Position numbers and translations under genes: made by a program. Below the pieces are notes generated by a model. The model ran no database searches and had not been told where the DNA came from. It saw nothing but the letters and a program-made list of their open reading frames with translations. A stretch of 64,000 nt of DNA, from contig NC_047031.1 in NCBI RefSeq assembly GCF_902652985.1, positions 26,288,001 to 26,352,000 of the forward strand, read 5' to 3'. This document shows positions 2,957-64,000 of this stretch, in pieces (the first letter of the stretch is position 1; every line of letters starts with the position of its first letter). The DNA comes from Pecten maximus (lineage: Eukaryota).

Positions 2957-3173
2957 CTCTCTAGCCGAGCAGCTAGTATTTACCTTGGTTATAATGGATC
3001 CCTGGTAAATATACTTGTTAAAATATACCACTTAGCTACATTGAGAGATAATCTTTTTAGCTCAATTGGTAGAGCATCAGACTAATAAGTCATAGGTCCG
3101 GGGTTCGATACCTAGCAGTTCGATACCTAGCAGAGGCAGTGATTTAAATTTTATAAGTCATGCACTCGTTACA
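2957..3173 (+). mobile_element. Degenerate tRNA-containing LTR copy (~3000-3173, plus) preceded by an inverted partial copy (2957-2993)
   Basis: CCCTGGTAAAT...TAGCTCAATTGGTAGAGC...GGTTCGATACC...GAGGCAGTGATTTAAA...GTTACA matches the 42.7-43.85 kb LTRs. Confidence 0.8.
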
Positions 3174-3206
3174 ATTTTATATGTTATGATATATAGAAGA
3201 ACCTAC

Positions 3207-4330: not shown

Positions 4331-4559
4331 CTTGTGTTTCTCTTTCTGAAATTACAAACGTACATTCAATCGCCAACTAGTTAAATTATCGGCTTAAATC
4401 ATACAGTGCAATTCATGTATTTGCATGATGTTAACTTATATCATATAACAGACTTATACATTAGAAATGTTAATCTGTATGCAAATGCTATTATGTACTA
4501 CCCATGCAATGTTTATATGGATATCATTTAGTTTTTGGGATATCCGGGCTAGGTGTAAC

Positions 4560-26937: not shown

Positions 26938-27024
26938 TCTCTGAAAGTACCAAAAGCTTTGATTAGTGGTATATCTTCTTCATGTGATACAGGTATTTTA
27001 TGATAAAACATCTCAAGACATAGA

Positions 27025-30000
27025 CTAGTACAAAATATAGTCAGAGTGTTTGGCAGGTGCTTTCCTATGTCTGCGACCCTGTTTTGGGTTAGTTTCTATA
27101 TTCTTAGAACTAATATTCTTAAGGTCTCTCCCAGACTCGTTTTCACTCTCTTTGAAAGTAGCACTCTCCTCACACCAATCACTTCTACTGTCATCAACTT
27201 GCTTGCTCTCGAAACAACTCTCGTCAACCTGAGTCTGTTGCTCTTTAACTTTTGCAAAATCCTCTGCATTCTCATTCCTGAGCATCTGAACCTTTTTTGG
27301 CTTCATGCGGTCTACATGAATTACTTGTAGCTTCCCTTTTCGCCCACAGCGTACGCGATATGTGACGTCAGTGAGTTTTGATATCACTCGGAATGGACCC
27401 TTCCAGCGACAGGCTAGCTTTGAACTTTGTCCTGTCTTGACGTTGGGAAAGAAAACGAATACATCATCACCAGCTTTGAATGGTTGCCAGGAGAGTTTCT
27501 GATCATGAAGCTTCTTCTGTCTAAGCATTCGTCCCTTTACACTTTCTCTGACTAACTGATGTGCGTCTTCCATCTTTTCCTGTAGCTCCCACGCCCATGT
27601 ATTCTGTGGTAATGCTTTCAGATTTCGTGGCATTGAGTATTGTAGATCTAGTGGAGTAGAAGTTTCTCTTCCAAGCATCATGAAGTTTGGGGAATTGGAA
27701 GTGGTCTCATGTTCGGTTGACCGATATGCCATCATGACATATGGCAAGTGTCTGTCCCAGTCAGTGTGTCGCTCATTCACAAATGCCCTCAACATGGTAA
27801 CCAGTGTCTTATTGAACCGCTCAACCATACCATCTGACTGCGGGTGGTAGGGAGTGGTACGGGTCTTTTGAATTTGCAGTATACGACACATTTCCCGAAA
27901 CAATGCACTCTCAAACTGAGAGCCCTGATCTGAATGGATAATACTGGGGACTCCGAATCGACAGACGACTTCTTCTACCAGTATGCGTGCTACGGTCTCT
28001 GCGTTCATGTTTTGCATTGGAAAACTTTCTGTCCACTTTGTGTAGTAGTCGGAGATAACCAAGATGTGCCTGTTGCCATCATCGGTCTCCGGCAATTCGC
28101 ACAGAATGTCCATAGCTATGCGCTCCATTGGGTATCCCGATTCAGTTATCTGCATAGGTGCTCTCTTGGTTTTTGTCATGTTCTTGCTCTTAGCACACAT
28201 CGTGCAACCAGTGACATATCGTTTGATATCATCTTGTATCCCAGGCCAGTAATACTGTTGGCGGATCTTGGCAAGAGTCTTTCTTGTTCCCAGATGAGCA
28301 GCTGTCTTGTTATCATGGGCATGACCAAGGATTGTGCGACGTTCGTTTCTAGGAACTATGATATGAACTACTCCTTTTTGTGTTTTTCTCACCAATAGAT
28401 CATCTTGAATGGACAGTATTTCAAACTGTGACCATAGGGATTTCACTGTTTTGTTTCTGCCACCTATGGACTTATACCCAGGTCTTTCCCCTTTCTTGAC
28501 CCAGTCAATAACCAGACCTAAGTCATCATCTTCCTCTTGTTTTTCGCTCAGGGTTTTCTCACGTTTTTCTTTTTCATCAGATTTACAAGTGTCTATGCTC
28601 CTCACTATCTGAGCTGTAGATTCAGTTGCTCGATTGTCTGCCTTCAGTTCCCAGTCTGGGTCAAAGTTGCATTGACGACAAGGGATCCTGCTCAGTCCAT
28701 CGGCATTCTGATGTTGCTTCCCTGGTCGATGAATGATGTGCATGTCATATGAGCTTAACACCTGAAGCCATCTTGCCATCTGGCCCTCTGGGTCTTTGAA
28801 ATTTAGCAACCATCTGAGCGAACTGTGGTCTGTTCTGACAGTAAACTTTCTGCCATACAGATAATGCCGGAAGTATTTTGTGAAATTGACGACAGCCAGT
28901 AACTCTTTACGCGTTACGCAATACTTCCTCTCTGCCTTGGTCAATGTTCGTCCTGCAAATGCTATGGGTCTCTCTATGCCATCAATTTCCTGTGATAGTG
29001 CAGCCCCAATAGCTTCATGACTCGCATCGGTGTCGAGTATGAACTCTTTACTAAAATCAGGGTGGGCCAGAGTTTTTGCACTTGTCAATTCTCTTTTCAG
29101 AATCTCATACGCTTCCTGACACTGAGGTGTCCAATCAAATTTCCGTCCCTTTTCTGTCAGCTTGTGTAGGCATTTCGCAATCACAGAAAAGTTTCTGACA
29201 AACTTTCTGTAATAACTACAGAACCCCAGGAATGACCGCAGTTGTTTGATGTTGACTGGGACTGGCCACTCCGCAACTTTCTTCACCTTATCTGGGTCGG
29301 TGGAGATACCTTCCTCCGAGATCTTGTGGCCAAGGTAAATGACTTCTTTGGCAAACAGACAACATTTTCTCGCCTTTAGCTTTAATCCAGCTTCTTGTAA
29401 GCGTTTGAACACTTGTTGCAGATTCTCAATCATGTCTTCAAATGTCTTCCCGGTCACGATTATATCGTCTAGGTAAATTAAACAGGTCTGCCACTGTAAA
29501 CCTGCTAGTACCGTTTCCATCAGTCTCTCGAATGTCGCAGGAGCTGACGCTAGACCAAAAGGCATGACCGTGAACTCATAAAGACCTGTTCTTGTCGCAA
29601 ATGCAGTCTTCTGGCGATCTTCAGGAGCCAAATCAACCTGCCAATAACCGGAGTTTAGGTCGAGTGTTGAGAACCACGAGCAACCTGACATTTGATCAAG
29701 AGCCTCGTCAATACGTGGAAGTGGATACGCATCCGGAATGCTAACAGCATTCAGCTGTCGATAATCCACGCAAAATCGTAAGCTCCCGTCCTTCTTTTTC
29801 ACGAGGACGATCCCAGAACTCCATGGACTGGAGGATTTCTGTATGATCCCTCTGTCAAGCATATCCTTTACTTGTCTATCAATCTCGGGACCAAGATTGC
29901 CTGGCACTCTTCTTACTGGCTGTTTTATGGGTTTGGCACCCCCAGTGTTGATCTTATGTTGAATCAAATCTGTTCTACCCAGATCGTCGTCAGTAACGGC

Positions 30001-32142: not shown

Positions 32143-32265
32143 ATTATATCACAGAGAGAATATAAGTAACAAACAATTTTTTTTTTTATTATTATTATTA
32201 CATCAACAACAGTTTATAAACTGTAGACTACTAAAATGTCACAAACAAGTTGTCAAATAACCAGG

Positions 32266-40056: not shown

Positions 40057-41383
40057 TCATTTGTGTAACTTTTTATGTTTGGTTAGTAACAGTTTACTAG
40101 TGTATAGCTGACCACACTGGTCACACGTGTGTGTGTCTTTATTGTGAGTCTTCATGTGTCGACTGAGATGTGTAGAGTGAATGAATGCTTTACTACACTT
40201 ACTACACTTAAACGGAGCGTCTCCCGTATGGATCATGAAATGTCTTGCCAGGCCACTTTTATCGGAGAATCCTTTGCCACAGACATCACACTTGTGAGGT
40301 TTCTCCCCCGAGTGTATTACCAGGTGTCTCTGCAGTGTACCCATTCTACCGTAACGCTTACCACAGATGTCACACTTGAACGGTTTTTCACCAGTGTGGA
40401 CGACCTGGTGTCTCAGAAGACCACTCAGGTCACTAAACATACCATCACAGGCATCACAGCGGTGAGTCTTTTGTCCGGTATGGATGGCAGAGTGTGTGTT
40501 AAGATGACTTTGCCGCTTGAATGATTTACCACAATCTAAACACTGAAATGGTTTGTCATCAGAGTGGACCTGGAGATGTTGCTTCAGTCCAACCTGCATT
40601 CTAAATGTTTTATCACAGAAATCACATGTGTAGGTATTTAGTTTTGAGTGTTGGTGGTTTTGAAGGTAAAATATGTCAGGAAAGCTTTAAAGCATATGTC
40701 GCATGTTAAGTCCTTCTTTTTGTTATGTGAAGATTGCTTTTCGGTATGGGACGATTTTTCTTCGCTATGTGAAGATTTTTCTCCGCTATGTGAAGATTTT
40801 TCTTCGCTATGTGAAGATATTCTGCTATCTGAAGAATTCTTTCTACTATGTGAGGAATTCTTTCTGTTATGTGAAATTTTCTTTTCGCTATGTGAAGATT
40901 TCTTTTTCTTATGTGACAATATCTTTTCGCTATGGGAAGATTTCTTTTTTTTATGTGACAATATCTTTTCGCTATGGGAAGATTTCTTTTCTCTGTGAGA
41001 AGATTTCTTTTTGCTATGTGAAGATTTCTTCGATTTCCTCCTGATTTCTTGTGTATTGTTACCAGAATTTGGATACAATTCTGTAAGATTCTGTACCTTG
41101 TCATGTCCATGTATACTACTGTGTTTATCTAAATCTGTCTTTTCACCGAATGTCTCGCCACAGAAGTCACATTCTGAATCAGCATGTATCTCTCTGTGCT
41201 CCTGAAATAGATCGTCCCTATCAAAGCATTTACCACATACACCACATGTGTGTGTCCCTGTACTAGGGAGGTCATTGTGGTATTCTTCTCTGTGTTGCAG
41301 TAGTTGAATGTCTCCAGATATGTCACATCTGTTGGGCTTCTCTGCTGGGACGGCAGGATCAACAGACACCAAACTGAGATTTG
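40057..41383 (-). CDS. C2H2 zinc-finger gene B, terminal exon (~10 fingers, K/S/H-rich repeat); apparent 1-nt deletion near 40665
   Basis: Acceptor TTATTCAG before 41383 (same phase and offset as gene A). Restoring one C (ACC CTT) joins ORFs 40638-41372 and 40057-40599 via FLTYFTLQNHQHSKLNTYTCDFCDKTFRMQVGLKQHLQVH. Confidence 0.87.
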
Positions 41384-41834
41384 CTGAATAATAATAAAAA
41401 AGAAAATAAATATAATGCCTTATGCTTATATGTTGAGATTACAGTTATTATCAACTAGCACTTTGTACAAAGTAATACAGTATTTTAGAACTAACTAAGG
41501 TTAACAATACACTGAAAATTGAATGTTAAGTAATAGGGTTCCATTGACCATGCAACAACAAGGATCTGACTAACTGAGATCACCAAATATGACTTCCTCC
41601 TGTAAACTACTTACGACAGGTGCAAGAAAAAAAATTCTTATGGTACATTTGATATCATGGTAAGATATATAGGGGTATTCCATATGAGGGGTCACAAAAA
41701 AACGAAGTTGTAAATTGAACCTCAGATCATTTTTGTGACCCCTTGGATGGAATTCACATAATGATATCCTTGTCTTTTGTACAGAAATGGGCGATCCTGT
41801 TATATCTAAATACAAAGATAAATGAAATGCCTAC

Positions 41835-42480
41835 CATTCTCTGGAAGTATAAGAGTTACACACCGAACGGGTGGCTTGACAACCGAAGTCTTCCAATGAG
41901 TCTGGTCATCAGGCTCAAGTTTTACAAAAAATCCAGCTACAACTGATTCACCAAGAGTTCCCTCCCCTAGTTCTATATCCGCTGCAGAAGTCTGTTGTTT
42001 TATAGAAGTCGACTCTGCTAAATACATTTCACCAAGAGTTCCCTCCCCTAGTTCTATATCCGCTGCAGAAGTCTGTTGATATGCGTCATCATCAGGCTCA
42101 AGTTTTATACAAGTCGACTCTGCTAAATGAATTTCACCAAGAGTTTCCTCCCCTTGTCCTTTATCAGCTATAGATATCTCTCTGTATAAGCTCTCATCCA
42201 ACTGCATCTTTACTGAAGACCCAGCTGTTAAACATGTAGATTCACAGAGAGTTCCCTCCCCTGGTTCTATATCAGCTACGGGCAGGTTCTCATCCAGATG
42301 CATCATTAAGGAAGACTCAGCTAAAATAGATTTACTGAGAGTTCCCTCCCCTGGTTCAATATCAGCTGCAGACATCTGCCTATAGGTGCTGTCATCTGGC
42401 TCAATCTTCAAGGAAGCCTCAACATTTTCAACCTGGTTATAATCTGTTTCAATATCTGTCCTCTTCAGTGTTCCCTTCAT
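41835..42480 (-). CDS. C2H2 zinc-finger gene B, upstream acidic exon
   Basis: Repeats of (L/I/V)K(I/L)EPDD...ADIEPGEGTL; ends RCVTLILPEN G|GTAGGC as in gene A; true 5' end uncertain. Confidence 0.75.
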
Positions 42481-42700
42481 CTCAACAGGTTATACTCTGT
42501 TTCAATATCTGTCCTCTTCAGTGTTCCCTTCATCTCAACAGGTTACACTCTGTTTTATATTAAAAAAGAAATTTAAAAAGTTGAGAAGTTATCGGTAGAC
42601 TATTTGGATCTATGAAATTATAAGTCATTATTTAATTTCTTTTTACAGTCATGACAAAAAATGAAGTCTCCCCAATTATAACAGTGCCGGGCTATATCTG

Positions 42701-45669: not shown

Positions 45670-48600
45670 ATGTCTACATTGCATCTTTCCCCTGAGTGGC
45701 AGTCGGACAATTCCCTGCTGATCTGCCTGAAACATCTGTTTGAAACAAAAATTGGCGCGGATGTGAGATTTTTTGTCGGAGAGAAACAGGACGTTGTGAT
45801 GGGGCATAGGAGTATCCTTGTATGTCGTAGTCCGGTTTTCTGTGACATACTGACGACACAGAAACCGGATCCTGTCCTTACCGAGTGGTCAATTAAAGTG
45901 ACCAATACTCCAAAGAATATCTTCAATATATTCCTTAGGTCAGTATTTTCTCAGTATGACGTCAATGACAAATAACCTTTTCTGAGGGCTTTGGGACCAA
46001 TGATAACGGACACATGACAATTTAATACAATTTCATATCATTAAGCAAAAGTCTACCATTTTGTGGTTTGAAAATTGAACTCCCCATTCACCAATTTTCA
46101 TCTTTATACAAGATGAAAATTCCCCATCTGAAATTGAAAGGAATAGGGCAAAACTTGCAGTAGATCTTAACTACTGTACAGAATTATCTTGGAAACACCT
46201 TTTTTCTTCCAATATTCTGGGCAGGTGTTTCCACTATCTTCATCTCCATCTGTGTGACTGGGCATTTGTTGGGTTGTGACGTCTGATGTTTTTCGCTATT
46301 GAGAAATATGTGATATTTTTATCAACTTTCCAATTCTTTGTAGTGAAAAATACATGTGACATCATAGACTCATTGTCAATGATCATTTTGTCTCGATTAG
46401 AAGTGAAATTGGACAGATTTTTTGCTTATCTTTTATGAAAGAATTAAGATGATAGAATTAAATTTGAATCATCGCTTTAATACCTTACTGCTTGTAGTTC
46501 AGTTACATTTAACATTATTAATTTTTAAAAATTTTTTTTTTATAATATATAGGCTTGCACTCCTGAAAGATCTGACAAGTTCTGGATCTGGATAATAAAA
46601 TCAGAATCTAATTAGGAATGTCTTCAACTGTTTTTATACAGGTACCTGTACACAGACAGTGTTTACCAGGAGATGACAGAACAAACTGCCAAGGCTTTGA
46701 TACGTCTGGCCCAGCAATACCGCGTCAACACGCTAGTTAGTTACTGCAGAGGAGTCTTAAACAGGAATATGTGTCAAGTACAGAAGGGCACATCAGAGTT
46801 TGAGGAAAGTACTTGTATATCTGAACAAAGTTCTGACAATACCAGCCATGTCTCGAAAGTGATAGACAGAAAACCCACAGCTATAGGCCGGGTAGTACAT
46901 TCTGTTTGTGATAACAGTATGTACTTAGTAAAAACTAGTGACAATACCAGGAATCATTCACAGACAGCCGAGGGAGTTAATTCACAGGAAGTCAGGACGA
47001 TATGTGTTTAAATAGTACAACTGAAAACCAAACACAGGACAATATCCCCGACATTGCGCCACAGATAAGCCACAGAAGTAAATTTTTCACTACAGATGCT
47101 GAAGATAATCAGACAATGCATGTTAAAGTGGAAATCCAAGATGGAGATTTTGGCAATAATGAGAATACTTCACACAGTTCTGTGTTAGAAAATTTTCAGG
47201 TCAGAAATCATGATGATGGTACTTCACAGAATGTTTTTTCAGAAAATCATGGTGTGGACAAAAGATACACTGGCAAAACTTTGCAGAATGTGAATAAAAG
47301 CCAAGCACAGTACATAAAGACAGAAATTGTGGATGAATCTTTAAGCCCTCCACAAGTCGGTGTTGTGATGGAAAACCTTGAGGATGGGAGTTACCAGTAC
47401 CCAGGAATAATCTCACATAATCTTACACAGCATATCAAGGAAGAATTCCCCGACGAGGAAACTATGGAAGTTGAAAATCACAATGAAAGAGATTATATTG
47501 TGAGTAATTCAGAGGAAATGGACATGATGAATGTACAGGATGCAGGAGGGGAGATAACTCATTCAGACAGAAATTATGCACAGAATGATGACGAAACTCT
47601 GAAGATGGAAATTCATGATGACAGAACTGATACAGACAATGATGAAACAGACATGGACAATGTTAGATGGCAGCCCGGTGATAAAGTACAAGTTGTGAGA
47701 GTCAGCAAAGATGTATTTCCGGCTGGGCAGTCTCCAAGTACAGGTAAATTATTAAAATTTAGTTTTTATCAATGTGTTAATCATTTGTTTCCTGTTGTAA
47801 TTTAATGTGTTTGCGTGCCTCACAAAGATTTACAAATCCTAGATCACAGGTTATGTACCCCTTCCCCCCACCAGGTATGTAAAATTTCCAATTTTGAATG
47901 CTAGATCCACAATATTTACAGTGTTTTTCCTGTCTATATATATATATATATTCCTAATGCATTTTAGCCGTAACTTTTAACCAAAAGATATCCAAAATTC
48001 CTAATTGTGTCCAGAAATTAATTTTTCAAAAAAAAAAAACATACTCCAATTGTGTTAGAGGATTCCCTTGATTACATGATCCTTTCTGACAACTGTAGTC
48101 TAATTGACCATGTTGGATTCATATACGTACACTGCATGCGCACCCAGTCAAATTTTTTGATTCGATCATTTTAAACTGCTAAATTATTTTTAAAAGATTT
48201 CCAGTGCTATATGTTATTACCTCTTTTTCAGGAATGCATCACTATTAATTTTATAAATCCACATAAATAGGCTGTATGTGCAATCAAAGACACAAAATCA
48301 TGATTATTTACATTTGCAGGCTTCATTCAGTAGCAATTCGGATTGAAAATGGCGGTGTGGTAAATGCAAAAATGGAATGTTAAGCAAAAACAAATGAAAA
48401 GCTCTTTCATTTAAACTTTATTTGTTTTGCATGGTACACACACATTCCTTATTTTTACCAACCATCATGTTCAAAATAGGTTACTGAAGCTGTGGAATGA
48501 TATATGGAGCAAAGTGTTTTGTTGCAAATTATTATTAACTTTGTGTGAATTAGTGACTGGACTGTTTAAATGGGATATATAATGTACCTAAACTGTTAGT

Positions 48601-51600
48601 ACACACCATTTTCATCAAGTTTATAGGGTTATAAAATTAAAATTTTGGGCGAATCGTGCAATGTCAAATAGGGTTCCGTTGCTAAAAGTCGGTTGGCGCT
48701 AGATCTAGAACAAAAAATAAAAGCCTGACACTTTCACCTAGCTGAAGTATATTGAAAAACACAGAAAAATATAAAATCCACATATTATATTTACCAAAAA
48801 ATAAAAACGATTAAAAGATTTTGATGTCTTTGTTTTGTGTATATAATATTAATGTTTTCTGCATTGAAGTGTGTTTATATTATAACCTTTTATCTTTTGA
48901 AAGTTAAAATGCTAAAAATGTTTATATAAGGCAATATATATATAACATCAGTAATATGCACGGGTAAGTGTTTCCTGGCGGTCCTACCAAAGAATTGATA
49001 TTCTGTTTGATTCAAATATCTCCTTGCTTTAATATTTTTGTTGATTTTCTATAGTGCTGTAGATATATTTTACGTGTTTTACCGTTCATTGACAGTTTGA
49101 GTCATTGTAGTGCTGTAAATGTGTACTGAGGTATATATTAACACTGTATCCAGACTTAATTTGTCCCCAGCTGGAACCTCTCCGTCCTTTCGTCCTTCTG
49201 TCCCTCTGCACTTTATCCTGCTGTATATATCTCCTATATAACTTGTCATGGCCTGGGATCTCCATACTTTGGACAGGAATTCAGTTATGTGGGGCAGTGT
49301 GTTGTGAACCACAGTTATGTGGGGCAGTGGGTTGTGAACCACAGTTATGTGGGGCATGCGCAGTGGGTTGTGTACAGTTATGTGGGGCAGTGGGTTGTGT
49401 ACAGTTATGTGGGACAGTGGGTTGTGAACCACAGTTATGTGGGGCAGTGGGTTGTGAACCACAGTTATGTGAGTCAGTGGGTTGTGAACCACAGTTATGT
49501 GGGGCAGTGGGTTGTGAACCACAGTTATGTGAGTCAGTGGGTTGTGAACCACAGTTATGTGAGTCAGTGGGTTGTGAACCACAGTTATGTGGGGCAGTGG
49601 GTTGTGAACCACAGTTATGTGGGGCAGTGGGTTGTGTACAGTTATGTGGGACAGTGGGTTGTGAACCACAGTTATGTGAGGCAGTGTGTTGTGATCCACA
49701 GTTATGTGGGGCAGTGGGTTGTGAACCACGGTTATGTGGGGCAGTGGGTTGTAAACCACGGTTATGTGGGGCAGTGTGTTGTGAACCACAGTTATGTGGG
49801 CCAGTGTGTTGTGAACCACAGTTATGTGGGGCAGTGTGAACCACAGTTATGTGGGGCAGTGGGTTGAAATTGTGAACCACAGTTATGTAGGGCAGTGGCC
49901 ATGGGTTGTGAACCACAGTTATGTAGGGCAGTGGGTTGTGAACCACGGTTATGTGGGGCAGTGGGTTGTGAACCACAGTTATGTGGGGCAGTGGGTTGTG
50001 AACCACGGTTATGTGGGGCAGTGGGTTGTGAACCACAGTTATGTGGGGCAGTGGGTTGTGAACCACAGTTATGTGGGGCAGTGGGTTGTGAACCACGGTT
50101 ATGTGGGGCAGTGGGTTGTGAACCACAGTTATGTGGGGCAGTGGGTTGTGAACCACAGTTATGTGGGGCAGTGTGAACCACAGTTATGTGGGGCAGTGGG
50201 TTGTGAACCACAGTTATGTGGGGCAGTGGGTTGTGAACCACAGTTATGTGGGGCAGTGGGTTGTGAACCACAGTTATGTGGGGCAGTGGGTTGTGAACCA
50301 CGGTTATGTGGGGCAGTGGGTTGTGAACCACAGTTATGTGGGGCAGTGGGTTGTGAACCACAGTTATGTGAGTCAGTGGGTTGTGAACCACAGTTATGTG
50401 GGGCAGTGTGTTGTGAACCACAGTTATGTGGGGCAGTGTGTTGTGAACCACAGTTATGTGGGCCAGTGTGTTGTGAACCACAGTTATGTGGGGCAGTGTG
50501 AACCACAGTTATGTGGGGCAGTGGGTTGAAATTGTGAACCACAGTTATGTAGGGCAGTGGCCATGGGTTGTGAACTACAGTTATGTAGGGCAGTGGGTTG
50601 TGAACCACGGTTATGTGGGGCAGTGGGTTGTGAACCACAGTTATGTGGGGCAGTGGGTTGTGAACCACGGTTATGTGGGGCAGTGGGTTGTGAACCACAG
50701 TTATGTGGGGCAGTGGGTTGTGAACCACAGTTATGTGGGGCAGTGGGTTGTGAACCACGGTTATGTGGGGCAGTGGGTTGTGAACCACAGTTATGTGGGG
50801 CAGTGGGTTGTGAACCACAGTTATGTGGGGCAGTGTGAACCACAGTTATGTGGGGCAGTGGGTTGTGAACCACAGTTATGTGGGGCAGTGGGTTGTGAAC
50901 CACAGTTATGTGGGGCAGTGGGTTGTGAACCACAGTTATGTGGGGCAGTGGGTTGTGAACCACAGTTATGTGGGGCAGTGGGTTGTGAACCACGGTTATG
51001 TGGGGCAGTGGGTTGTGAACCACAGTTATGTGGGGCAGTGGGTTGTGAACCACAGTTATGTGAGTCAGTGGGTTGTGAACCACAGTTATGTGGGGCAGTG
51101 TGTTGTGAACCACAGTTATGTGGGGCAGTGTGTTATGAACCACATTTATGTGGGGCAGTGTGTTGTGAACCACAGTTATAAATGTGGGGCAGTGGGTTGT
51201 GAACCATAAGTAGGTCACTTTTACTTACTTTTGACCTTTGATTTACGTATATACATCTAAGAAGAATGTATTGGATAATGTATAATGTGAATTCACTAGT
51301 ACTGCTGTTCCAAATAATGTATATATATGTGAATTCACTGCTGTTCCATTATGTATTTATACAACATGATGTTTTGAGGAGAGAGCGTCACTAAGATGGC
51401 ATTACATGCCCAATATAGTGGCCAATACTATAAACTTATGATGATATATATAGAGATCTGTTTAAACTGTAAATCATTTTGTCTTGGCTCCATTTCCAGC
51501 ACCAAATTTTCACTTGAACTTTAGGCTTGGTGTACAGTAATTATATACGACAGTACCAATATATATACCGGTAATGTAGGTCTCTCTGACCTACATTATG

Positions 51601-54600
51601 ACCTTTGACCTACAAATGTACATCCTTGACTTTTAATTTCCTATTCTGTACATACAGAGGATGTGTAAACTTGGCTGATTTGTTTCTCAAGTAAGACGAG
51701 ATGTCTGGTATTTTAGGTCATGTGACCAGAAGTGTAAAGTTATACTTGTACACATGTACATGATCATGAACTGGCCATTTGTCTGATGAAGGTGACAATG
51801 TTCGTACTGTATATATACGTATGTAAACATAAATGACTCATCAAGACAATTCGGTTGAATATCGCTAACGTTTTCAAGACGTGTATTGGCTATCTTCAGG
51901 CGATTACTTTTTAATGCTTAGTAACAACATTATGACGTAATACAATCAATAACATAATGGGGAGGTAATAATTACGTTACTGTATTTTAAGGTGTGACGA
52001 CACCAATTTTTAACCATTGAGTGCCGGTTTGCATATTTCGCTTTGTAGCATTACACTCGGGCATCTTGTGAAATGGATAAACACGGAATAATCCTTTTCT
52101 GTATATATATACGTAATGGTCATTGAAACGTCACACATAAGCATTCATTGGTTGTGTTACAAAAATCCTTACAAATTCATTCAAACAGCATGCGCAGTGA
52201 TCATGATTTGATTATGGAATATAGCCAATAATACTGAATTCATTGATTGTTCAGATGTACTCTAAATGTCTATCAATCTTCGTTTAATGAGTGCCATTTT
52301 ACATGTTCAACTTATATCATAACACAAGATTATAGAGAATAAGCCTGAAAGCAGAAAGACTTCCATGCTTGTCTTCCATCCCCCTCGAGCTCCCCACCCA
52401 ACCCCTATCACATCACATATATATGTGTTATATTTATATACCCTGCACCCAAAATAAAATATTGAGCTCTCACAAGTAAACGACATATATATATATCGTA
52501 GTAGATTAATGTTTGAGAGTGTAAGCTAGCTTTCTCTGCCATATAACATTATAAATGATATAATGGTGAAGATCAATTACATATAAATGATATAATGGTG
52601 AAGATCAATTACTTTTTTGTAGATCAGTGTGATATATCCATCCTTGGGTTGTGATTGGCCTGAATGCAATATTTATTATGAAGACACAAAACTTACAAAA
52701 TCCAGTCGGCTTTAATTTCAGAACACAACTTCCTTATCTGACAGCCTAAACAGGAATAGATTTGGAATTTTTGTTTAAGATGATCTTATCTCAATGCCTC
52801 TGTGTATAATCAAACTTTGTAGTTAGCTGGTGAAAAAAAAAAAAATCAGAAACAGCAATATTATTTCTGTGATCCCTGACAGTTTTAAATTTGATATAAT
52901 CTTGTAGCTGGAGCTACTGTCAAACATGGGAAATGCCACACCTTATTGATCTCATTCTATGACTGTCTATGTTTGAATCCGATACAACAACGTGATTTCT
53001 GTGATGACATCCATGCATGATTATGTATATGTTTATATACATTTTTGTCCTGTGTGTCAGTATGTATTCATTATCCATGCCTGGCACTTGTGGCTGTTTT
53101 GTCTGTGAATCAGTATATATATCATGGCTCCAATTTCGCTAACCAAGAGTGTTCTATACGATACTCTCCTTTTAAAAAAAGGGAAAATATCGTATTGAAC
53201 ATCCTTGGGTTGCGAAGTTGATATGGCTGATATGGCTCTGGTATCTTAGAATCTTCCTCCTGTTTGTGTGTCTAGGACCGGAACCCATGGACACGGACCA
53301 CCGACATCCTGAACACTACGGAGATGGTTCCTGGGCCGATATAAATTTAGACGAAAGTGAAGTTTTGTTTTATGTTGGTGCTATGGAAAACGACCCAAGT
53401 TACAGTCCGTCGCAGTCAGCAGAAGAAAACGATGACGATGTTCCATTTTACGTAGATGATGAGGAGGGAGACCCTAGTTATAGTCCATCTTCTTCTGAAG
53501 TTGAAAATGATGACGACAGTTCTTCTGATGGAGACGATGGTGATGACAATGATGATTATGATGATGACATGTCCTCTAATGAAGAAAATGATGATGATGC
53601 TGACGACAAGAAAATAAGGAAAAGTGAAAAGATGAAAAGTAAAAAATCCAATCATATGTCATCTGATGTGGCAAGTTTAAGTGGGGACAACTTGAAACCT
53701 GCTACAAGGAAGAAAATTTGTCCGCAAGACTGCACTTACGATGTTACCTATCCTGACATCTATACCAAAACGTATGTGTACAAAAAGAATCAAAATTCAA
53801 AGTTTGGACGGATGTATGACAAACTTCACGCATGCATTTTCTGTGAACGGTTGATAAGTAATATTCAAAGTCACTTGGGAAGAAGACACCGAACAGAAGA
53901 TGAAATTAAGGATATCCGTGATTTAAAGAGAAAAATAAAAAAGGCTGATGAGTCTAGTAAGAAAGGTCTCGAGCTCAAAAAGAAGTACCTGCAGAACCTG
54001 CTTCGTAATAGAGGAGACAATTTACATAATAAAAAAGTTTTGGCAGCAAAAGAAGGTGAAATATTGATAAAAAGGAGAAAACGTGATAATGCTTTTAATG
54101 TACAGGATTATGGTCCGTGTCCGGACTGTGAGGAATGGATCGTACTGGAGTATATCACGAAGCATCAAACATCTTGTCTTGGTATAAAGTCAAGGTTTAC
54201 GAATAAACATCAGACTATCTCTCAAAATATATCGGATCCTGTAGAAACATGTACGAGTAAAGGTCAAGGTGAAACTCCAAGTATAACAGAAACACATGAA
54301 ACAAGTACTGCGAGTATGCCAAAAGGTTCAGCAATAATTCAGTCACAAATAATGAAAGGAAAGATAGTCGGTGGATCAAGCAAGCTTAAAAAGGAAGTAT
54401 TTCCGTATATGCTGTCCGATGAAAGGACAGAAGCTGCAAAAGAAGATCGCCTGATCAAAACACTAGGTGAAGTTTGGCTTATGAAAAATATTGACGATAT
54501 CAATAAATCCCAGAGGATAAAATTGACTGGTTTCAGGATGCGTCTATCTGCAGGAATTCTACTGCGAGTTAGGAAAGAAACGGGCCTGGATGGGTCAATG

Positions 54601-57600
54601 AGTGATTTCTTGTGTCCACGCCATTTTGATAAAGTAGTGCAGTGTTCTCTTCAAGTCTGCAAAGATGAGGAACATGGAAAGCTAAAAAATCCCATCACGG
54701 CCATCAAACTGGGATATGATCTGAATCGGTTAGCAACAGCAAAGCTGGGATATGCCATCAAAGAAAGTAATGAAGATGAAAAACGAGAAGCCAGGGATGT
54801 CTTAAAACTGTTGCAGAGTGAATGGAGCTCTCAAGTTTCAAAACTAACGAGTGGCTCATCAGAAAGCAAGGATTTAAAGAAGAAAAATGAAATGCCAGAT
54901 GCAGAAGACATCAGAAAACTAGCATTGTATCTGGTTCTTCAGCTGAAGAACATTGATCTAGAAAACTTAAACCAAGACATGTTTAGGGAGGCCGTAGTTT
55001 TGACACAAGCACGGCTGATTCTTTATAACAGATGCCTTCCAGAGGAGCTGGAAAAACTCAGGTAAGTTATAGAAGAGAAACTCTGAAGTTTAGGGGAGTA
55101 TGTGGGTTAACAGTGATATTTAGGGGATTATGTGGGTTAACAGTGATATTTAGGGGATTATGTGGGTTAACTGTGATATTTAGGGGATTATATGGGTTAA
55201 CAGTGATATTTAGGGGATTATGTGGGTTAACAGTGATATTTAGGGGATTATGTGGGTTAACAGTGATATTTAGGGGATTATGTGGGTTAACAGTGATATT
55301 TAGGGGAGTATATAGGTTCAACTTAAAGGCAAATTTGCACCATAGTCATAAGGGTATACATTTTGTGTATCGGAATTAGGACGTTTTAGTTTTTGTACCA
55401 AATATTCAAATCTCACTGATCCTGCTTGATAAATCTCCACAATAAGAACAACTACACTTTTGTTTTGGACACATGGTCATTAAAGTAAAACAGTACAATA
55501 TATAGGGTCAAATTTCTGTCTTAGTTTGATGATGTTATGTACTGTGTAGATCAGCAGGAAACACAGGTGCCCTGGGTTTGGAACATATGTATACGAGTTT
55601 AGAAAAAAGAAAGTCCTGTGGCAATGAATGACTGTTTATTATAATTTCATATCAATTGTCAAAATTGTTGAAAGTATTTGGTGTTTTATGTTGACAGCTG
55701 AGAATTAAATTTTTTTTCAGTGTTGAAGACTATCATGGAAGACCTAACAGCAATGATACAAGTTTTTCTCTGCGACATTCGATGACCATGTTGGAGGAGC
55801 TGCTTCTGAATTCTCGAGGTTTAGCAGAAATAGGAGTCAATGTAAGTATTACAGTTTAATTTCTATAAATAGAGGTTACACGAGTGGTTGTTGGATATGG
55901 AATTTATTTCACACGAGTAAGTTATTTTTTAAAAGTTACAATAGACAAGAGCTTTAGCGAGTGTTTTTTGCAACTTTAAAAAAATAACTTACTCATGTGA
56001 ATAAATTCCATATCCAACAATTTCGAGTCGTGTGACCTGTTTCTACCACAATAATATCGGCTTGAATCAAAGGGAAATGTGGCCAAGTATAATTTCGTGT
56101 ATGCAAATAAAGTGTACCGGTGACGTCCGGGACCCGGTGATGTGACGTCATTAGATTATTGATGACGTCAATAACAATTGCAGCTTGGGTCAAAGTTCAC
56201 CGTGTTAGCCAATCAAAATGCGTACAGAGTTTATACCTCGTGTGGTATAAACTGATTGTTAATCAACAGCTGTAATGATTAACTGATGGTCTGAGAGTTG
56301 AATAACACAGGGTATTGTGGTAGAAAGTTTGATCACGCTCTGTATAACCTTGGTAAGATACTCACTTAATTCGTGCTGACTTGGCTAACAAGAATTTCTC
56401 TTTTATTTACAGACTGACCTCAGAGTAGCACTTGTTATCCCCGGTGAGGTGAAAGTGATTCTGGAGATGATGGCAGACAAAAAATGTAGAAAGAAAGCTG
56501 GCATCCAAGACAACAACAAATATATGTTCGCAAGCACAGGTATTTGTATTTCATATTCAAACATGTTTGTTCCCTGACTGGCCTGTGCTACAACATGCAA
56601 ATACATGTATTGTAACAGCATTGTGATGTCATCGATTAATGACGTCGTACATCTTGAGTTAATGAAAAACAACCTCGTAGTTTAAATAAGTCTTGTACCA
56701 AAATGTATGTTTTGATTATTTTCTCATAAATATGAATTTTGTGAAAAATAGAATATTACACGAGTGTAAATTGGTATTAATTAGACATCAGCAATTAAGA
56801 TGTCATTCATGTAGTGGTAAAGTTATATAGAAATGTTTGTATGCTTGTTTTCTCAATCTTAATTTCACAGTTCAGTTTCACATTGTGATCTTTAAATAGA
56901 ACTTTTTTCAAATTTTCCTAATGACCATAACTTCAAAACTGTATTTCATTCAATGCATTCTTAGTTTTGTGAGAAATAGAATATTACGCAAGTGTCATTT
57001 AGAATTTATTAAACTTAAAAGATAGTTTGACATGTCTCTCACCTAAAGGCATGTGACATATAATCCAATTATTACTAAACTGACAAATACAATACTGCTG
57101 TTGTAGTATTGTATTTATCAAAATATAATGTTTTTTTGGTCATTTATCGTAATTGGGCACTACTGGATAAATGTAGTATTGTATTTACTGAAGAATATAT
57201 TGGTAAAAGTCATCAAATGTTAACATTTCAAATGTAGTGTTATTGTCCATTAATTTCCACATACTTAGTAACTATCAGATAGTTTAAAAAGAAATATAAA
57301 ATACAAAACAAGCTGATACAGAAAAAGTTTGTTACTATCAGATAGTTAAAAAAAAAGATAAAATACAAAACTAGCTGATACAGAAAAAGTTTGTTACTAT
57401 CAGATAGTTAAAAAAGAAATATAAATAACAAAACTAGCTGATACAGAAAAAGTTTGTTACTATCAGATAGTTAAAAAAGTTAAAAAAGAAATATAAAATA
57501 CAAAACTAGCTGATACAGAAAAAGTTTGTTACTATCAGAAAGTTCAAAAAGAAATATAAAATACAAAACTAGCTGATACAGAAAAACTTTGTTACTATCA

Positions 57601-60600
57601 GATAGTTAAAAAAGAAATATTAAATACAAAACTAGCTGATACAGAAAAACTTTGTTACTATCAGATAGTTAAAAAAGAAATATAAAATACAAAACTAGCT
57701 GATACAGAAAAAGTTTGTTACTATCAGATAGTTAAAAAAGAAATATAAATACAAAACTAGCTGATACAGAAAAAGTTTGTTACTATCAGATAGTTAAATA
57801 AGAAATTAAAATACAAAACTAGCTGATACAGAAAAAGTTTGTTACTATCAGATAGTTAAATAAGAAATATAAAATACAAAACTAGTTGATACAGAAAAAC
57901 TTTGTTACACAAACTAGCTGATACAGAAAAAGTTTGGTAATATAAAGTGGAACATTTAACTTCAGGTGAAGCAGCTGTGAGTGCTAATGAATCTTTAGAG
58001 AATGTGAAACGGAGACCAGAGTTAGACTTGAAACATCCTGAATGTATCCATGGGAACAACTTCCGGAGACACACTGCTACAATTACACAGGTATTACTGT
58101 CATGATTCCTTACAACCACTTTCCTAATATGACCCTGGCTGTTGTTATTCCCTATAGACAACCGTCCTCATATGACCCTGGCTGTTGTTCCCTATAGACA
58201 ACCGTCCTCATATGACCCTGGCTGTTGTTCCCTATAGACAACCCTCCTCATATGACCCTGGCTGTTGTGTTTCCCTGAGACACCCGTCCTCATATGACCC
58301 TGGCTGTTGTGTTTCCCTGAGACACCCCTCCTCATATGACCCTGGCTGTTGTTCCCTATAGACAACCGTCCTCATATGACCCTGGCTGTTGTGTTTTCCT
58401 GAGACACCCCTCCTCATATGACCCTGGCTGTTGTTCCCTATAGACAACCCTCCTCATATGACCCTGGCTGTTGTGTTTCCCTGAGGCACCCGTCCTAATT
58501 AGTAATATGACCCTGGCTGTTGTTGTCCCCTATAGACACATGTCCTCATATGACCCTGGCTGTTATGTTTCCCTGGGACACCCCTCCTAATATGACCCTG
58601 GCTGTTGTGTTTCCCTGAGACACCCGTCCTCATATGACCCTGGCTGTTGTTGTCCCCTATACACACGTCCTCATATGACCCTGGCTGTTGTTACCCTGGG
58701 ACACCCCTCCTAATATGACCCTGGCTGTTGTGTTTCCCTGGGACACCCGTCCTCATATGACCCTGGCTGTTGTTGTTCCCTATACACACGTCCTCATATG
58801 ACCCTGGCTGTTGTTACCCTGGGACACCCCTCCTAATATGACCCTGGCTGTTGTGTTTCCCTGGGACACACGTCCTCATATGACCCTGGCTGTTATGTTT
58901 CCCTGAGACACCCGTCCTCATATGACCCTGGCTGTTGTTGTCCCCTATAGACACACGTCCTCATATGACCCTGGCTGTTGTTCCCTATAGACACCCGTCC
59001 TAATATGACCCTGGCTGTTGTTGTTCCCTATACACCCGTCCTAATATGACCCTGGCTGTTGTTCTCTATAGACACACGTCCTCATATGACCCTGGCTGTT
59101 GTTCCCTATAGACACACGTCCTAATATGACCCTGGCTGTTGTTGTTCCCTATAAACCCGTCCTAATATGACCCTGGCTGTTGTTGTTCCCTATACACCCG
59201 TCCTAATATGACCCTGGCTGTTGTTGTTCCCTATACACCCGTCCTAATATGACCCTGGCTGTTATGTTTCCCTGGGACACCCGTCCTCATATGACCCTGG
59301 CTGTTATGTTTCCCTGGGACACCCGTCCTCATATGACCCTGGCTGTTATGTTTCCCTGGGACACCCGTCCTCATATGACCCTGGCTGTTGTGTTTCCCTG
59401 GGACACCCCTCCTCATATGACCCTGGCTGTTGTTGTCCCCTATAGACACATGTCCTCATATGACCCTGGCTGTTGTGTTTCCCTGAGACACCCGTCCTAA
59501 TATGACCCTGGCTGTTATGTTTCCCTGGGACACCCCTCCTCATATGACCCTGGCTGTTGTTGTTCCCTATACACACGTCCTCATATGACCCTGGCTGTTG
59601 TTCCCTATAGACAACCCTCCTCATATGACCCTGGCTGTTGTGTTTCCCTGAGACACATGTCCTCATATGACCCTGGCTGTTATGTTTCCCTGGGACACCC
59701 GTCCTCATATGACCCTGGCTGTTGTGTTTCCCTGAGACACCCGTCCTCATATGACCCTGGCTGTTGTGTTTCCCTGAGACACCCGTCCTCATATGACCCT
59801 GGCTGTTGTTGTCCCCTATACACACGTCCTCATATGACCCTGGCTGTTGTTCCCTATAGACAACCCTCCTCATATGACCCTGGCTGTTGTGTTTCCCTGA
59901 GACACATGTCCTCATATGACCCTGGCTGTTATGTTTCCCTGGGACACCCGTCCTCATATGACCCTGGCTGTTGTGTTTCCCTGAGACACCCGTCCTCATA
60001 TGACCCTGGCTGTTGTGTTTCCCTGAGACACCCGTCCTCATATGACCCTGGCTGTTGTGTTTCCCTGAGACACCCGTCCTCATATGACCCTGGCTGTTAT
60101 GTTTCCCTGGGACACCCGTCCTCATATGACCCTGGCTGTTATGTTTCCCTGGGACACCCCTCCTCATATGACCCTGGCTGTTGCTGTCCCCTAGACACCT
60201 GTCCTCATATGACCCTGGCTGTTGTTGTCCCCTATACACCCCTCCTAATATGACCCTGGCTGTTATGTTTCCCTGGGACACCCGTCCTCATATGACCCTG
60301 GCTGTTGTGTTTCCCTGAGACACCCGTCCTCATATGACCCTGGCTGTTGTTGTCCCCTAGACACCTGTCCTCATATGACCCTGGCTGTTGTTGTCCCCTA
60401 TACACCCGTCCTCATATGACCCTGGCTGTTATGTTTCCCCGAGACACCCGTCCTCATATGACCCTGGCTGTTGTTGTCCCCTATACACCCGTCCTCATAT
60501 GACCCTGGCTGTTGTTGTCCCCTAGACACCTGTCCTCATATGACCCAGGCTATTGTTGTCCCCTAGACACCTGTCCTCATATGACCCTGGCTGTTGTTGT

Positions 60601-62390
60601 CCCCTAGACACCTGTCCTCATATGACCCAGGCTGTTGAGATTCCATGAGACACTTGTCCTCATATGACCCTGGCTGTTGTGTTTCCCTGAGACACCCGTC
60701 CTCATATGACCCTGGCTGTTGTGTTTCCCTGGGACACCCGCCCTAATATGACCCTGGCTGTTGTGTTTCCCTGGGACACCCGTCATCATATGACCCTGGC
60801 TGTTGTGTTTCCCTATAGACACACGTCCTCATATGACCCTGGCTGTTGTGTTTCCCTGGGACACCCGCCCTAATATGACCCTGGCTGTTGTGTTTCCCTG
60901 GGACACCCGTCATCATATGACCCTGGCTGTTATGTTTCCCTGGGACACCCGTCCTCATATGACCCTGGCTGTTGTTGTCCCCTGAGACACACCGTCCTCA
61001 TATGACCCTGGCTGTTGTTGTCCCCTGAGACACACCGTCCTCATATGACCTTGACAGTTTTGTTTCTCCCGAGACACCTGTCTTCACATGTCCCTGGCTG
61101 TTATGTTTCCCTGGGACACCCGTCCTCATATGACCCTGGCTGTTGTTGTCCCCTGAGACACACCGTCCTCATATGACCCTGGCTGTTGTTGTCCCCTGAG
61201 ACACACCGTCCTCATATGACCTTGACAGTTTTGTTTCTCCCGAGACACCTGTCGTCACATGTCCCTGGCTATTGTGTTTCCCTGAGACACCCGTCCTCAT
61301 ATGACCTTGACAGTTTTGTTTCTCCCGAGACACCTGTCGTCACATGTCCCTGGCTATTGTGTTTCCCTAAGACATTCTTCACCATATGACACTGACTGTT
61401 GGTGTACTTATTTTATTTTCATTTTCTAGGCCCTAAGTTTCATTTTATGGAAACTTGCTTTCAATGATCTGAGCTGCATTTGATGAACATTCAAATTCTA
61501 CGCACTGAACCTATATTTGATGATATTTCTATTCCTAGGCTCTGAGTTTGGATGACGATGAGGTGAAGTGGGTCTGTAATCACTTTGGCCAGGCAGAAAT
61601 AACACACAGGGAGGAAAACTGGTCGATTTCGGGAATTACAAAGAAGATTGATATAGCTAAACTGATGTTAATACAGAACCTTGGCAGCAAGTTCAGCAAC
61701 AGAACGGTGTCTGAAATCCAATTTGATGGTGAATATATAGATATAATCTACTTGCTTGTAACAAGCATTTTCATTAGATTAAAAATTTATGTTGTTGGCC
61801 CGTAAAGTGAAAAAATGACATCACTGTTTGTAACATCGCTTTTGATTGGCTGAAAGAGAGGCGTAATAATATCTAAGACAAATGAGTCCATCAATTATAA
61901 TGAATTTCCAAAAAGATTGTGTACAGTAAATTAAATTATAAGGATTAACTTGAATGTTTTATTTGCTTATGGAGCTATAACACAAAAAAATGGAGTTTGT
62001 TGTCACAAACTGCATAGGAATGTAATTTTACCTGTTTTAAAATCAAATATTAGAACATCAGCATGTAAGAAAGGACTTGTACAGTTGTGTAATTCCTTTA
62101 AGTGTTAATACTTTGATCTTATATCTTATATGCTACATGTAAAATTAATGTATTTTAAAATGAAAAGACATCATTCTGCGTAGCCAAATAAATGAAGTCC
62201 CCCTAAGTGGTGTATCATCCAGCTGTATACTGCCACTTCAAAGTATTGAAATTTTGATTTATTTGACCTGGAACGCTTTACATATGTACATCTTCTGTTT
62301 TGATTTGATTTTAAGAGCTGGACGAAGCTGTAGAGAATAACTTTGAAGTCCAATTGGAAAACCAGCCTAAACATCAACCAAGTCATAGTG
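45670..62390 (+). CDS. BTB/POZ-domain protein fused to a degenerate tyrosine-recombinase-like domain; exons 45659-45938, 46642-47743, 53276-55061, 55721-55841, 56413-56539, 57966-58090, 61539-61728, 62316-62390; continues beyond the window (>1260 aa); apparent frameshift near 47000
   Basis: BTB motifs ADVRFFVG, GHRSILVCRSPVF, FLR|YLYTD, LAQQYRVNTLVSYC. All seven introns are GT-AG and phase-compatible (2,1,2,0,1,0,1). C-terminal ARLILYNRCLPEEL, NKYMFAS, NFRRHTATITQ, WVCNHFGQ, IAKLML. Confidence 0.8.
49263..51207. repeat. G-rich minisatellite, 30-bp unit GAACCACAGTTATGTGGGGCAGTGGGTTGT, ~65 copies
   Basis: Directly visible; accounts for the repetitive ORFs at 49079-51218. Confidence 0.97.
51861..51904 (-). 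ncRNA. Degenerate minimal hammerhead-ribozyme-like motif, probably in a Penelope remnant (~51850-52330)
   Basis: ATCGC CTGAAGA n17 GAAA ACGTT A GCGAT: stem I ATCGC/GCGAT, palindromic AACGTT, weak stem II. Confidence 0.45.
55088..55311. repeat. 30-bp minisatellite TTAGGGGATTATGTGGGTTAACAGTGATAT, ~7.5 copies
   Basis: Directly visible just after the donor at 55061. Confidence 0.95.
55868..56326. mobile_element. Foldback non-autonomous element, family H3
   Basis: Hairpin TTGTTGGATATGGAATTTATT.../...AATAAATTCCATATCCAACAA plus a second IR TTTCTACCACAATA / TATTGTGGTAGAAA. Confidence 0.65.
57265..57938. repeat. AT-rich minisatellite, ~62-63-bp unit, ~10 copies
   Basis: TTACTATCAGATAGTTAAAAAAGAAATATAAAATACAAAACTAGCTGATACAGAAAAAGTTTG repeats. 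Confidence 0.95.
58120..61400. repeat. Minisatellite, 39-42-bp unit with constant core GTCCTCATATGACCCTGGCTGTT, ~80 copies
   Basis: Directly visible. Confidence 0.97.
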
Positions 62391-62409: not shown

Positions 62410-64000
62410 CCATAACCACTCTCAACACCAGTCATTAACCACTCACAGCAGATCACCAACAATCATTAACCACTCAACTGTCATTAACCACTCAACTGTC
62501 ATTAACCACTCAACTGTCATTGACCACTCAACTGTCATTGACCACTCACCAGTCATTAACCACTCACCGGTCATTAACCACTCACTAGTCATTAACCACT
62601 CAACTGTCATTGACCACTCACCAGTTATTAACCACTCAACTGTCATTAACTACTCACTAGTCATTAACCACTCACCAGTCATTAACCACTCAACTGTCAT
62701 TGACCACTCAACTGTCATTGACCACTCACCAGTCATTAACCACTCACCGGTCATTAACCACTCACTAGTCATTAACCACTCAACTGTCATTAACTACTCA
62801 CTAGTCATTAACCACTCACTAGTCATTAACCACTCAACTGTCATTGACCACTCACCAGTCATTAACCACTCAACTGTCATTGACCACTCACCAGTCATTA
62901 ACCACTCAACTGTCATTAACTACTCACTAGTCATTAACCACTCAACTGTCATTGACCACTCACCAGTCATTAACCACTCAACTGTCATTGACCACTCACC
63001 AGTCATTAACCACTCAACTGTCATTAACCACTCACCAGTCATTAACCACTCAACTGTCATTAACCACTCAACTGTCATTAACCACTCACCAGTCATTAAC
63101 CACTCAACTGTCATTGACCACTCACCAGTCATTAACTACTCAACTGTCATTGACCACTCACCAGTCATTAACTACTCAACTGTCATTAACCACTCAACTG
63201 TCATTAACCACTCAACTGTCATTAACCACTCACCAGTCATTAACCACTCACTAGTCATTAACCACTCAACTGTCATTGACCACTCACCAGTCATTAACCA
63301 CTCAACTGTCATTGACCACTCACCAGTCATTAACTACTCAACTGTCATTAACCACTCAACTGTCATTAACCACTCACCAGTCATTAACCACTCAACTGTC
63401 ATTGACCACTCACCAGTCATTAACTACTCAACTGTCATTAACCACTCAACTGTCATTAACCACTCACTAGTCATTAACCACTCAACTGTCATTGACCACT
63501 CACCAGTCATTAACTACTCAACTGTCATTGACCACTCACCAGTCATTAACCACTCAACTGTCATTGACCACTCACCAGTCATTAACTACTCAACTGTCAT
63601 TAACCACTCAACTGTCATTAACCACTCACTAGTCATTAACCACTCAACTGTCATTGACCACTCACCAGTCATTGACCACTCACCAGTCATTAACTACTCA
63701 ACTGTCATTAACCACTCAACTGTCATTAACCACTCACTAGTCATTAACCACTCAACTGTCATTGACCACTCACCAGTCATTAACTACTCAACTGTCATTA
63801 ACCACTCACCAGTCATTAACTACTCAACTGTCATTAACCACTCACCAGTCATTAACTACTCAACTGTCATTAACCACTCACCAGTCATTAACCACTCAAC
63901 TGTCATTGACCACTCACCAGTCATTAACTACTCAACTGTCATTAACCACTCAACTGTCATTAACCACTCACTAGTCATTAACCACTCAACTGTCATTGAC
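62410..64000. repeat. 18-bp minisatellite GTCATTAACCACTCA(ACT/CCA/CTA), running to the window end
   Basis: Directly visible. Confidence 0.97.

Follow-up and report, generated by a model that had tools for sequence, protein, structure and literature searches.

What is known of inactivated tyrosine recombinases (YRs) that persist as host genes comes mainly from the vertebrate DUF3504 set. In the Crypton-derived DUF3504 genes (KCTD1 isoform b, ZMYM2/3/4, QRICH1, KIAA1958 and WOC), the catalytic tyrosine and other catalytic residues have been lost, and in KCTD1 isoform b the dead domain occurs together with a BTB domain (Kojima and Jurka 2011, PMC3212892). We analyzed a gene of the scallop Pecten maximus, LOC117315012, which begins in a 64,000-nucleotide stretch of contig NC_047031.1 (assembly GCF_902652985.1, forward strand, positions 26,288,001 to 26,352,000). 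This whole stretch is referred to as the window, and positions are counted from its first letter. The product of the gene is the 1061-residue NCBI entry ‘uncharacterized protein LOC117315012 [Pecten maximus]’, here P0003. The reading that we prefer, with a probability of about 0.75, is that LOC117315012 is a single-copy, transcribed and spliced gene with a dismantled recombinase active site, exapted as a non-catalytic protein that binds DNA or chromatin.

The likeness to the Crypton-derived DUF3504 genes lies in a eukaryotic YR domain that appears to have been retained as a host gene after its catalytic residues were lost. In contrast to those genes, P0003 has no match to PF12012, and a BTB domain, if fused, would be N-terminal here and not C-terminal. 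The DUF3504 genes are conserved across vertebrates, whereas no ortholog of more than 50% identity was found for P0003 among annotated proteins. The present case belongs to a recombinase family other than DUF3504, found widely across molluscs, echinoderms and insects and lacking a model in Pfam. Close paralogs and relatives in oysters still have intact active sites, and the contrast with them makes this gene a clean system for asking what role a recombinase scaffold that does not cut can play.

Recombinase fold and active site of P0003

No Pfam recombinase family was matched by P0003 or by 33 members of its family even at E 10, PF00589 (Phage_integrase) included, and a sequence search of the PDB with P0003 gave no match. 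The fold and family tests covered the database protein P0003, which represents exons 4 onward. An AlphaFold2 model of a compact relative (P0122), built on a 33-sequence alignment, had a mean predicted local distance difference test score (pLDDT) of 81. In a Foldseek search of the PDB, all matches of this model were tyrosine recombinases, topoisomerase IB or protelomerases, with XerH first at E 1.3e-4. Its VIA-align superposition on XerH reached Z 14.2 and took in 304 residues of both domains, core-binding and catalytic; the next matches were integron integrase, Cre, lambda Int and Tn1549 Int. For P0003 itself, the model had a mean pLDDT of 66, with values of 85-95 in the core-binding domain; it aligned with XerH at Z 11.7 over 284 residues and returned the same list of matches. 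The top 50 structural entries were all YRs or topoisomerase IB. The C-terminal region is thus modelled as a Cre/Xer-type two-domain tyrosine-recombinase fold, in agreement with the first-pass annotation of the window, which had expected a Cre/lambda-Int fold there.

P0003 and its relatives resemble XerH (5jjv/5jk0), IntI (2a3v) and Cre in this two-domain fold, with ~285-305 residues aligned at Z 11.7-14.2, and the family relatives retain the R..K..R..H..Y series in register with the Xer, Cre and integron recombinases. The differences are considerable. Identity is ~10-13%, and P0003 is eukaryotic and multi-exon, carries zinc knuckles and a Myb-like tail, and is without four of the five catalytic residues.

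The consensus motifs of the family read LYNRRRPGELE, IRGKTGRGVPV, NxYxFAN, TNLRKHxAT and HLGHTxxVHxxxYR, with Arg-I, Lys, Arg-II, His and Tyr in the usual order and spacing. Their counterparts in P0003 are LYNRCLPEELE, IGVNTDLRVAL, NKYMFAS, NNFRRHTAT and HFGQAEITHREENW. Box I reads RCLPEE instead of RRRPGE, and the beta-hairpin reads EIGVNTDLRVALVIP instead of EIRGKTGRGVPVLIP. At the catalytic columns of P0003, Arg-I is replaced by Leu, the beta-hairpin Lys by Asn, the His by Gln and the nucleophilic Tyr by Asn; only Arg-II, in box II, is kept. The degenerate motifs listed in the first-pass annotation (RCLPEE, IGVN, NKYMFA, FRRHTAT and FGQAEITHREENW) are all present in the exons. The annotation had also proposed that the first Arg, the Lys, the His and the nucleophilic Tyr were lost, and these are true losses by comparison with the relatives spanning the catalytic region, 45-47 of 48 of which carry Arg-I, Lys, His and Tyr (45-48 of 48 for all five residues, Arg-II included). 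Asn holds the position of the nucleophile, and the Trp noted in the annotation stands at the position of the Arg that follows.

Arg-I and Lys are missing in P0003 alone among the 48 proteins that span the catalytic region, and likewise among the 33 aligned members. The nucleophilic Tyr has also been lost in two others, P0047 (Tyr to Phe) and P0027 (His to Gln, Tyr to Pro). The latter is a protein of 3026 residues with 10 matched stretches, and the Tyr losses of P0047 and P0027 are independent. Conservation in the other members reaches at least 90% at 56 columns; P0003 is changed at 15 of them, and 12 of these 15 lie within the catalytic motifs, so the damage is aimed at the active site and does not reflect general decay. 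None of the zinc-knuckle Cys/His columns or the conserved core-binding columns is changed. In the other members, 0-3 such columns are substituted, the higher counts in truncated models being alignment gaps.

We consider it extremely unlikely that P0003 is still an active recombinase or topoisomerase that works with substitute residues. The box II Arg and a second His (H739) are indeed kept, but Tyr, Arg-I, Lys and His have been replaced by residues unable to do their chemistry, and the segment expected to bear the nucleophile (residues 735-750) is modelled at pLDDT <50. There is good support for LOC117315012 as a catalytically dead, retained recombinase-derived gene. With Arg-I, Lys, His and Tyr replaced, a phosphotyrosine link would be impossible, and the protein, which keeps its zinc-knuckle, core-binding and scaffold residues, probably acts by binding DNA or chromatin without catalysis. 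The gene would then be an exapted (neofunctionalised) derivative of a recombinase gene.

A YR-like fold in a DNA-binding repressor is found, by the titles of its PDB entries (9rgl, 9rd5), in SroF of phage phi3T. SroF was among our structural matches (Z 9.7 with the P0122 model and Z 7.8 with the P0003 model), although it is a bacteriophage protein and unrelated in sequence. By those titles, it would be a precedent for a recombinase fold that serves DNA binding alone. That P0003 might act as a repressor, with recombinase elements as its targets, is speculation.

Retention of the gene and the nature of its family

In a HMMER scan, the non-acidic portion of the big exon (exon 4) matched the NCBI protein at 100% identity, and exons 4-9 (53276-62390) reproduce it residue for residue from its start codon at ATG 53287, 11 nt after the acceptor at 53276 (Table 1). 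Exon 4, the big exon, encodes an acidic tract, a C2H2-like motif, a CCHC knuckle, a core-binding-like helical domain and the degenerate box I. The two Cys/His motifs reported in the first-pass annotation (CIFC...HLGRRH and CPDC...HQTSC) are present in it. The gene runs on for ~4 kb past the window, where five more coding exons, at the window-equivalent of ~64689-68047 (L015:689-4044), encode two Myb/SANT-like repeats. The earlier model of eight GT-AG, phase-compatible exons stands for the part from 53276 to 62390, which is P0003; the step from 47743 to 53276 is phase-compatible only by reading of the sequence, and the BTB part changes frame.

Both the big exon and the BTB exons occur once each in the 918-Mb assembly. 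Contigs of public RNA runs from three studies contain the big exon, and spliced joints were recovered from 55061 to 55721 (X3) and from 55841 to 56413 (X1, X2), indicating that the gene is transcribed and spliced. The big exon carries 17 single-nucleotide polymorphisms (SNPs), 9 synonymous and 8 nonsynonymous, against 359 synonymous and 1414 nonsynonymous sites. The ratio of nonsynonymous to synonymous polymorphism (pN/pS) is ~0.23, with a binomial P of 0.003, or 0.04-0.08 when transition bias is allowed for. The first-pass annotation had named a multicopy recombinase part with neutral dN/dS as a refuting outcome; this part is single-copy, and the 17 SNPs of its big exon give the within-species pN/pS stated above.

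Among Pecten paralogs, P0004 (on C13) is nearest to P0003, with 42-48% identity and the same intron positions. The maximum-likelihood tree places P0003 as sister (98/93) to an oyster clade whose branching matches the order of the oyster species and in which no catalytic residue has been lost. The branch leading to P0003 is 0.8, vs ~0.3 for the oysters (~2.7 times longer). LOC117315012 is ~45-50% diverged from its nearest relatives, yet its frame is open over at least 11 coding exons and 1061 codons, with intact splice sites.

A neutrally decaying relic of a mobile element, without function, would also have lost its catalytic residues, and the long terminal branch and the failure to find an ortholog would agree with it. 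Against this stand the frame that has stayed open at ~50% divergence, the single copy, the splicing in RNA contigs, the pN/pS of ~0.23 and the concentration of the losses in the active site, which together argue against neutral decay. We therefore regard the relic as very unlikely.

Several observations weigh against the preferred reading of an exapted, non-catalytic gene. AlphaFold2 models derived from aligned active relatives would display the fold in any event. The RNA-run contigs cover introns too, which points to low expression or to pre-mRNA or genomic DNA in the libraries, and the polymorphism test consists of 17 SNPs in one exon. Syntenic orthologs in other bivalves had been suggested as a check on the first-pass annotation, and none with more than 50% identity turned up among the annotated proteins, a collection that includes other scallop genomes.

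We searched for the wider family with the non-acidic portion of the big exon; the whole big exon gave 2 matches, acidic low-complexity words dominating. The search recovered 2251 matches at E <=1e-3 from molluscs, echinoderms and insects, with at least 25 diverged loci in the Pecten genome. These matches, together with the lack of a Pfam model, bear out the large, uncharacterised metazoan YR family of the first-pass annotation. Members begin with a variable N-terminal part, continue with a C2H2-like motif, a CCHC zinc knuckle and the core-binding (Xer/Cre-like) and YR catalytic domains, and end in a Myb/SANT-like tail, which is duplicated in P0003. The N-termini of members with intact sites are PWWP-like in P0157 and P0109 (in P0163 by source name only), and P0182 has a SET domain.

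The same annotation had described the family as mobile; the near-identical intronless copies gave no sign of transposition. Intronless relatives on C890/C1033/C971 and on C8/C3006 are 99.6-100% identical across the whole fetched stretch. Transposition of these near-identical copies was considered and set aside, as identity over the whole stretch suggests assembly redundancy or haplotigs. The clade around P0003, the closest one, looks vertically inherited: its introns are conserved, its oyster orthologs follow the species order, and PWWP N-termini are common to its gastropod and bivalve members. Judged from its sequences, the family may consist of vertically inherited, catalytically intact, chromatin-targeted recombinases, in view of the intact catalytic residues, the conserved introns and the PWWP or SET N-termini, and its members could be something other than ordinary transposons. 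With a vertically inherited family, P0003 would be a host gene's dead paralog and no recently tamed transposon.

The family is also distinct from the Crypton/DUF3504 elements by sequence criteria. Neither P0003 nor its relatives match DUF3504 (PF12012), and the Pecten genome holds at least 150 DUF3504 matches, none of them at the loci of this family. An hhalign comparison with Pecten Cryptons gave 2% probability with a thin two-sequence template; the motifs nonetheless align in register.

The BTB exons and their relation to the recombinase gene

Upstream of the big exon on the same strand lie the BTB/POZ domain and the acidic linker rich in psi-K-x-E motifs that were described in the first-pass annotation, and both are there. 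PF00651 is matched in exon 1, which covers the first 71 positions of the Pfam BTB model, and the second half of the domain is in the exon that begins at 46642. The linker is an open reading frame (ORF) of 247 codons up to the donor at 47743/47744 with four motifs (VKVE, IKTE, IKEE and LKME). The two open frames, 46642-47008 and 46981-47743, overlap at 46981-47008, and this frame break means that a continuous BTB-linker protein would need a putative short intron, for which 46917-46987 (GTATGT..CAG, 71 nt) is the best candidate, or an indel.

As DNA, the BTB exons and the linker are each single-copy, and the linker is unique in the genome. BTB exon 1 has ~20 paralogs, mostly on the same chromosome, many of which share the exon end at residue 89. 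The two closest paralogs that were examined (L026 and L028) consist of BTB, linker and C2H2 arrays. The BTB and psi-K-x-E linker exons derive from the BTB-zinc-finger gene family. They resemble BTB-zinc-finger (POK-type) factors in having an N-terminal BTB, the same exon break as the C2H2-array paralogs and a psi-K-x-E-rich linker. They differ in that no plus-strand C2H2 array follows the BTB part, either in the remainder of the window or over the next 34 kb. Downstream, the candidates for DNA binding are all parts of LOC117315012: its knuckles, its dead recombinase and its Myb repeats.

These exons could belong to LOC117315012. Such a single gene would combine a BTB, a linker with SUMO motifs, zinc knuckles, the dead recombinase and Myb repeats in one oligomerising chromatin factor, with BTB-zinc-finger exons replacing PWWP. 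We hold this view tentatively, at somewhat less than even odds. The donor at 47743 leaves one base and the acceptor at 53276 needs one, so that direct reading gives ...SPSTG|PEPMD without a stop, a match expected by chance in 1 of 3 cases. If the parts are fused, the predicted junction would be ...CCAAGTACAG joined to GACCGGAACC. Donor and acceptor are on the same strand, coding-like composition stops exactly at the donor, and no other plus-strand coding exon was found between 47743 and 53276. Members of the BTB-zinc-finger family always have a DNA-binding C-terminus, and, as noted, no plus-strand C2H2 array is available to supply one here.

The analysis of RNA-run contigs covered 51300-57270 and cannot name the upstream partner of the big exon. 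Contigs begin at 53274 in two samples (X1 and X2), and an unspliced X1 contig ends at 53303, an overlap of 30 nt. In a k=31 graph, such an overlap implies that another path enters from upstream and has only ‘AG’ in common with the intron, as would be the case for exon 3 (..ACAG). Use of the acceptor at 53276, with an upstream exon ending in ..VAG, is therefore probable.

We give about an even chance to the alternative that two genes are present, a truncated or decaying BTB-linker remnant and LOC117315012 with a non-coding first exon of its own, in which case the phase match would be fortuitous. P0003 starts at 53287, and an acceptor followed after ~10 nt by ATG is the usual layout of a first coding exon, as in BTB exon 1. 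In its frame break, the BTB part looks like a gene in early pseudogenisation. The two-gene alternative does not readily account for the 267-codon ORF that is open after the frameshift, which would be unlikely in a decaying sequence, nor was a candidate 5' exon found at 52300-53273 in X2.

Against the single gene is the NCBI model of P0003, which lacks BTB and begins inside the big exon. Annotated N-termini are demonstrably incomplete in this family. Oyster relative P0157 and Pecten P0004 have PWWP-like exons upstream of the big exon, and the NCBI protein of P0004 omits them. The P0004 (LOC117340499) exons lie on the minus strand at L016:6281-6379 and L016:6002-6073 (G000:C13, ~16.80 Mb) and are conserved with the P0157 N-terminus at E 7e-10. 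A reader domain was thus ancestrally spliced onto the big exon and was missed by NCBI in P0004, which makes an NCBI start inside the big exon weak evidence against fusion. No PWWP remnant was found in the 53 kb of the window upstream of the big exon.

The fusion is further opposed by its absence elsewhere, since none of the 44 listed relatives, the oyster clade included, has a BTB, nor does a BTB lie within 10 kb upstream of the oyster relative. The need for the putative 71-nt intron, to bridge the frame break, counts against the single gene as well. The intron phase at the big exon is 2 in the oyster vs 1 in the window, from which nothing follows, the N-termini not being alignable. On balance, we rate in-frame splicing of the BTB and linker exons onto the big exon as somewhat less likely than not.

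A fuller scenario, in which BTB-zinc-finger 5' exons replaced the ancestral PWWP module in the scallop lineage and the active site was then dismantled, leaving a BTB-dependent oligomerising DNA-binding factor, strikes us as unlikely. If the fusion were true, BTB would have been joined to a dead recombinase for a second time, independently, in an invertebrate parallel of vertebrate KCTD1b from an undescribed recombinase family outside Crypton/DUF3504, and the gene would exemplify N-terminal module swapping from PWWP to BTB.

Feature positions, repeats and neighbouring genes

Table 1. Exons of the BTB part and of LOC117315012 in the window, with the putative intron between them.
Feature	Position	Strand	Remarks
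BTB/POZ exon 1	45670..45938	+	ATG 45670 after a strong acceptor; donor GT at 45939; Pfam PF00651, E 7.2e-5
Rest of BTB domain (YLYTDSVYQEM...LVSYCRGVL)	46642..47008	+	From three-frame translation; stop at 47009-47011
Acidic psi-K-x-E linker ORF (exon 3)	46981..47743	+	Frame other than that of 46642-47008; donor CAG|GTAAAT after 47743, phase 1
Putative 5.5-kb intron, BTB-linker exons to big exon	47744..53275	+	Contains 30-bp x 64 minisatellite at 49282-51206
Big exon (exon 4)	53276..55061	+	Acceptor at 53276; 100% identical to P0003 residues 1-592
Exon with degenerate beta-hairpin, catalytic Lys lost	55721..55841	+	Matches P0003; joints in RNA-run contigs
Exon with conserved NKYMFA motif	56413..56539	+	Matches P0003; joint in RNA-run contigs
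Exon with FRRHTAT (box II Arg kept)	57966..58090	+	Matches P0003
Exon with HFGQAEITHREENWS	61539..61728	+	Matches P0003; His to Gln, nucleophilic Tyr to Asn, next Arg to Trp
Linker exon	62316..62390	+	Matches P0003; gene runs on past the window end

C2H2 zinc-finger arrays and linkers rich in psi-K-x-E motifs are also encoded by two minus-strand genes in the window, at 40060-42489 and 1483-4351; neither yielded a BTB. The gene at 40060-42489 is head-to-head with the BTB exon, 3 kb apart. We considered an inversion that split a minus-strand BTB-zinc-finger gene with its zinc-finger array at 40060-41438, and dropped it, as 1483-4351 holds a second BTB-less zinc-finger gene built in the same way and the linkers of the minus-strand zinc-finger genes show no similarity to exon 3. 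A minus-strand open frame of 1707 aa at 27028-32148 adjoins a zinc-finger ORF at 26098-26979. Beyond the window, ~57 kb past its end, paralog L028 (G000:C17:26408766-26417765) is another BTB-zinc-finger gene whose BTB is of the same family; it has an open frame of 1173 aa, rich in repeats, and sits in a chromosome-17 cluster of BTB-zinc-finger genes.

Minisatellites fill much of the introns of the gene. In addition to the array in the putative 5.5-kb intron, they comprise 30 bp x 8 (55089-55318), 63 bp x 10 (57271-57908), 42 bp x 78 (58122-61401) and 36 bp x 43 (62463-63997). Several have a strong GC skew, and long spurious ORFs result on both strands. Intron 5 holds a near-perfect palindrome of ~135 bp at 55888-56020, with arms at 55888-55947 and 55962-56020. 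The depth of RNA-run contigs on this palindrome sums to ~47,000, vs 10-17 on the exons, which marks it as a very abundant repeat.

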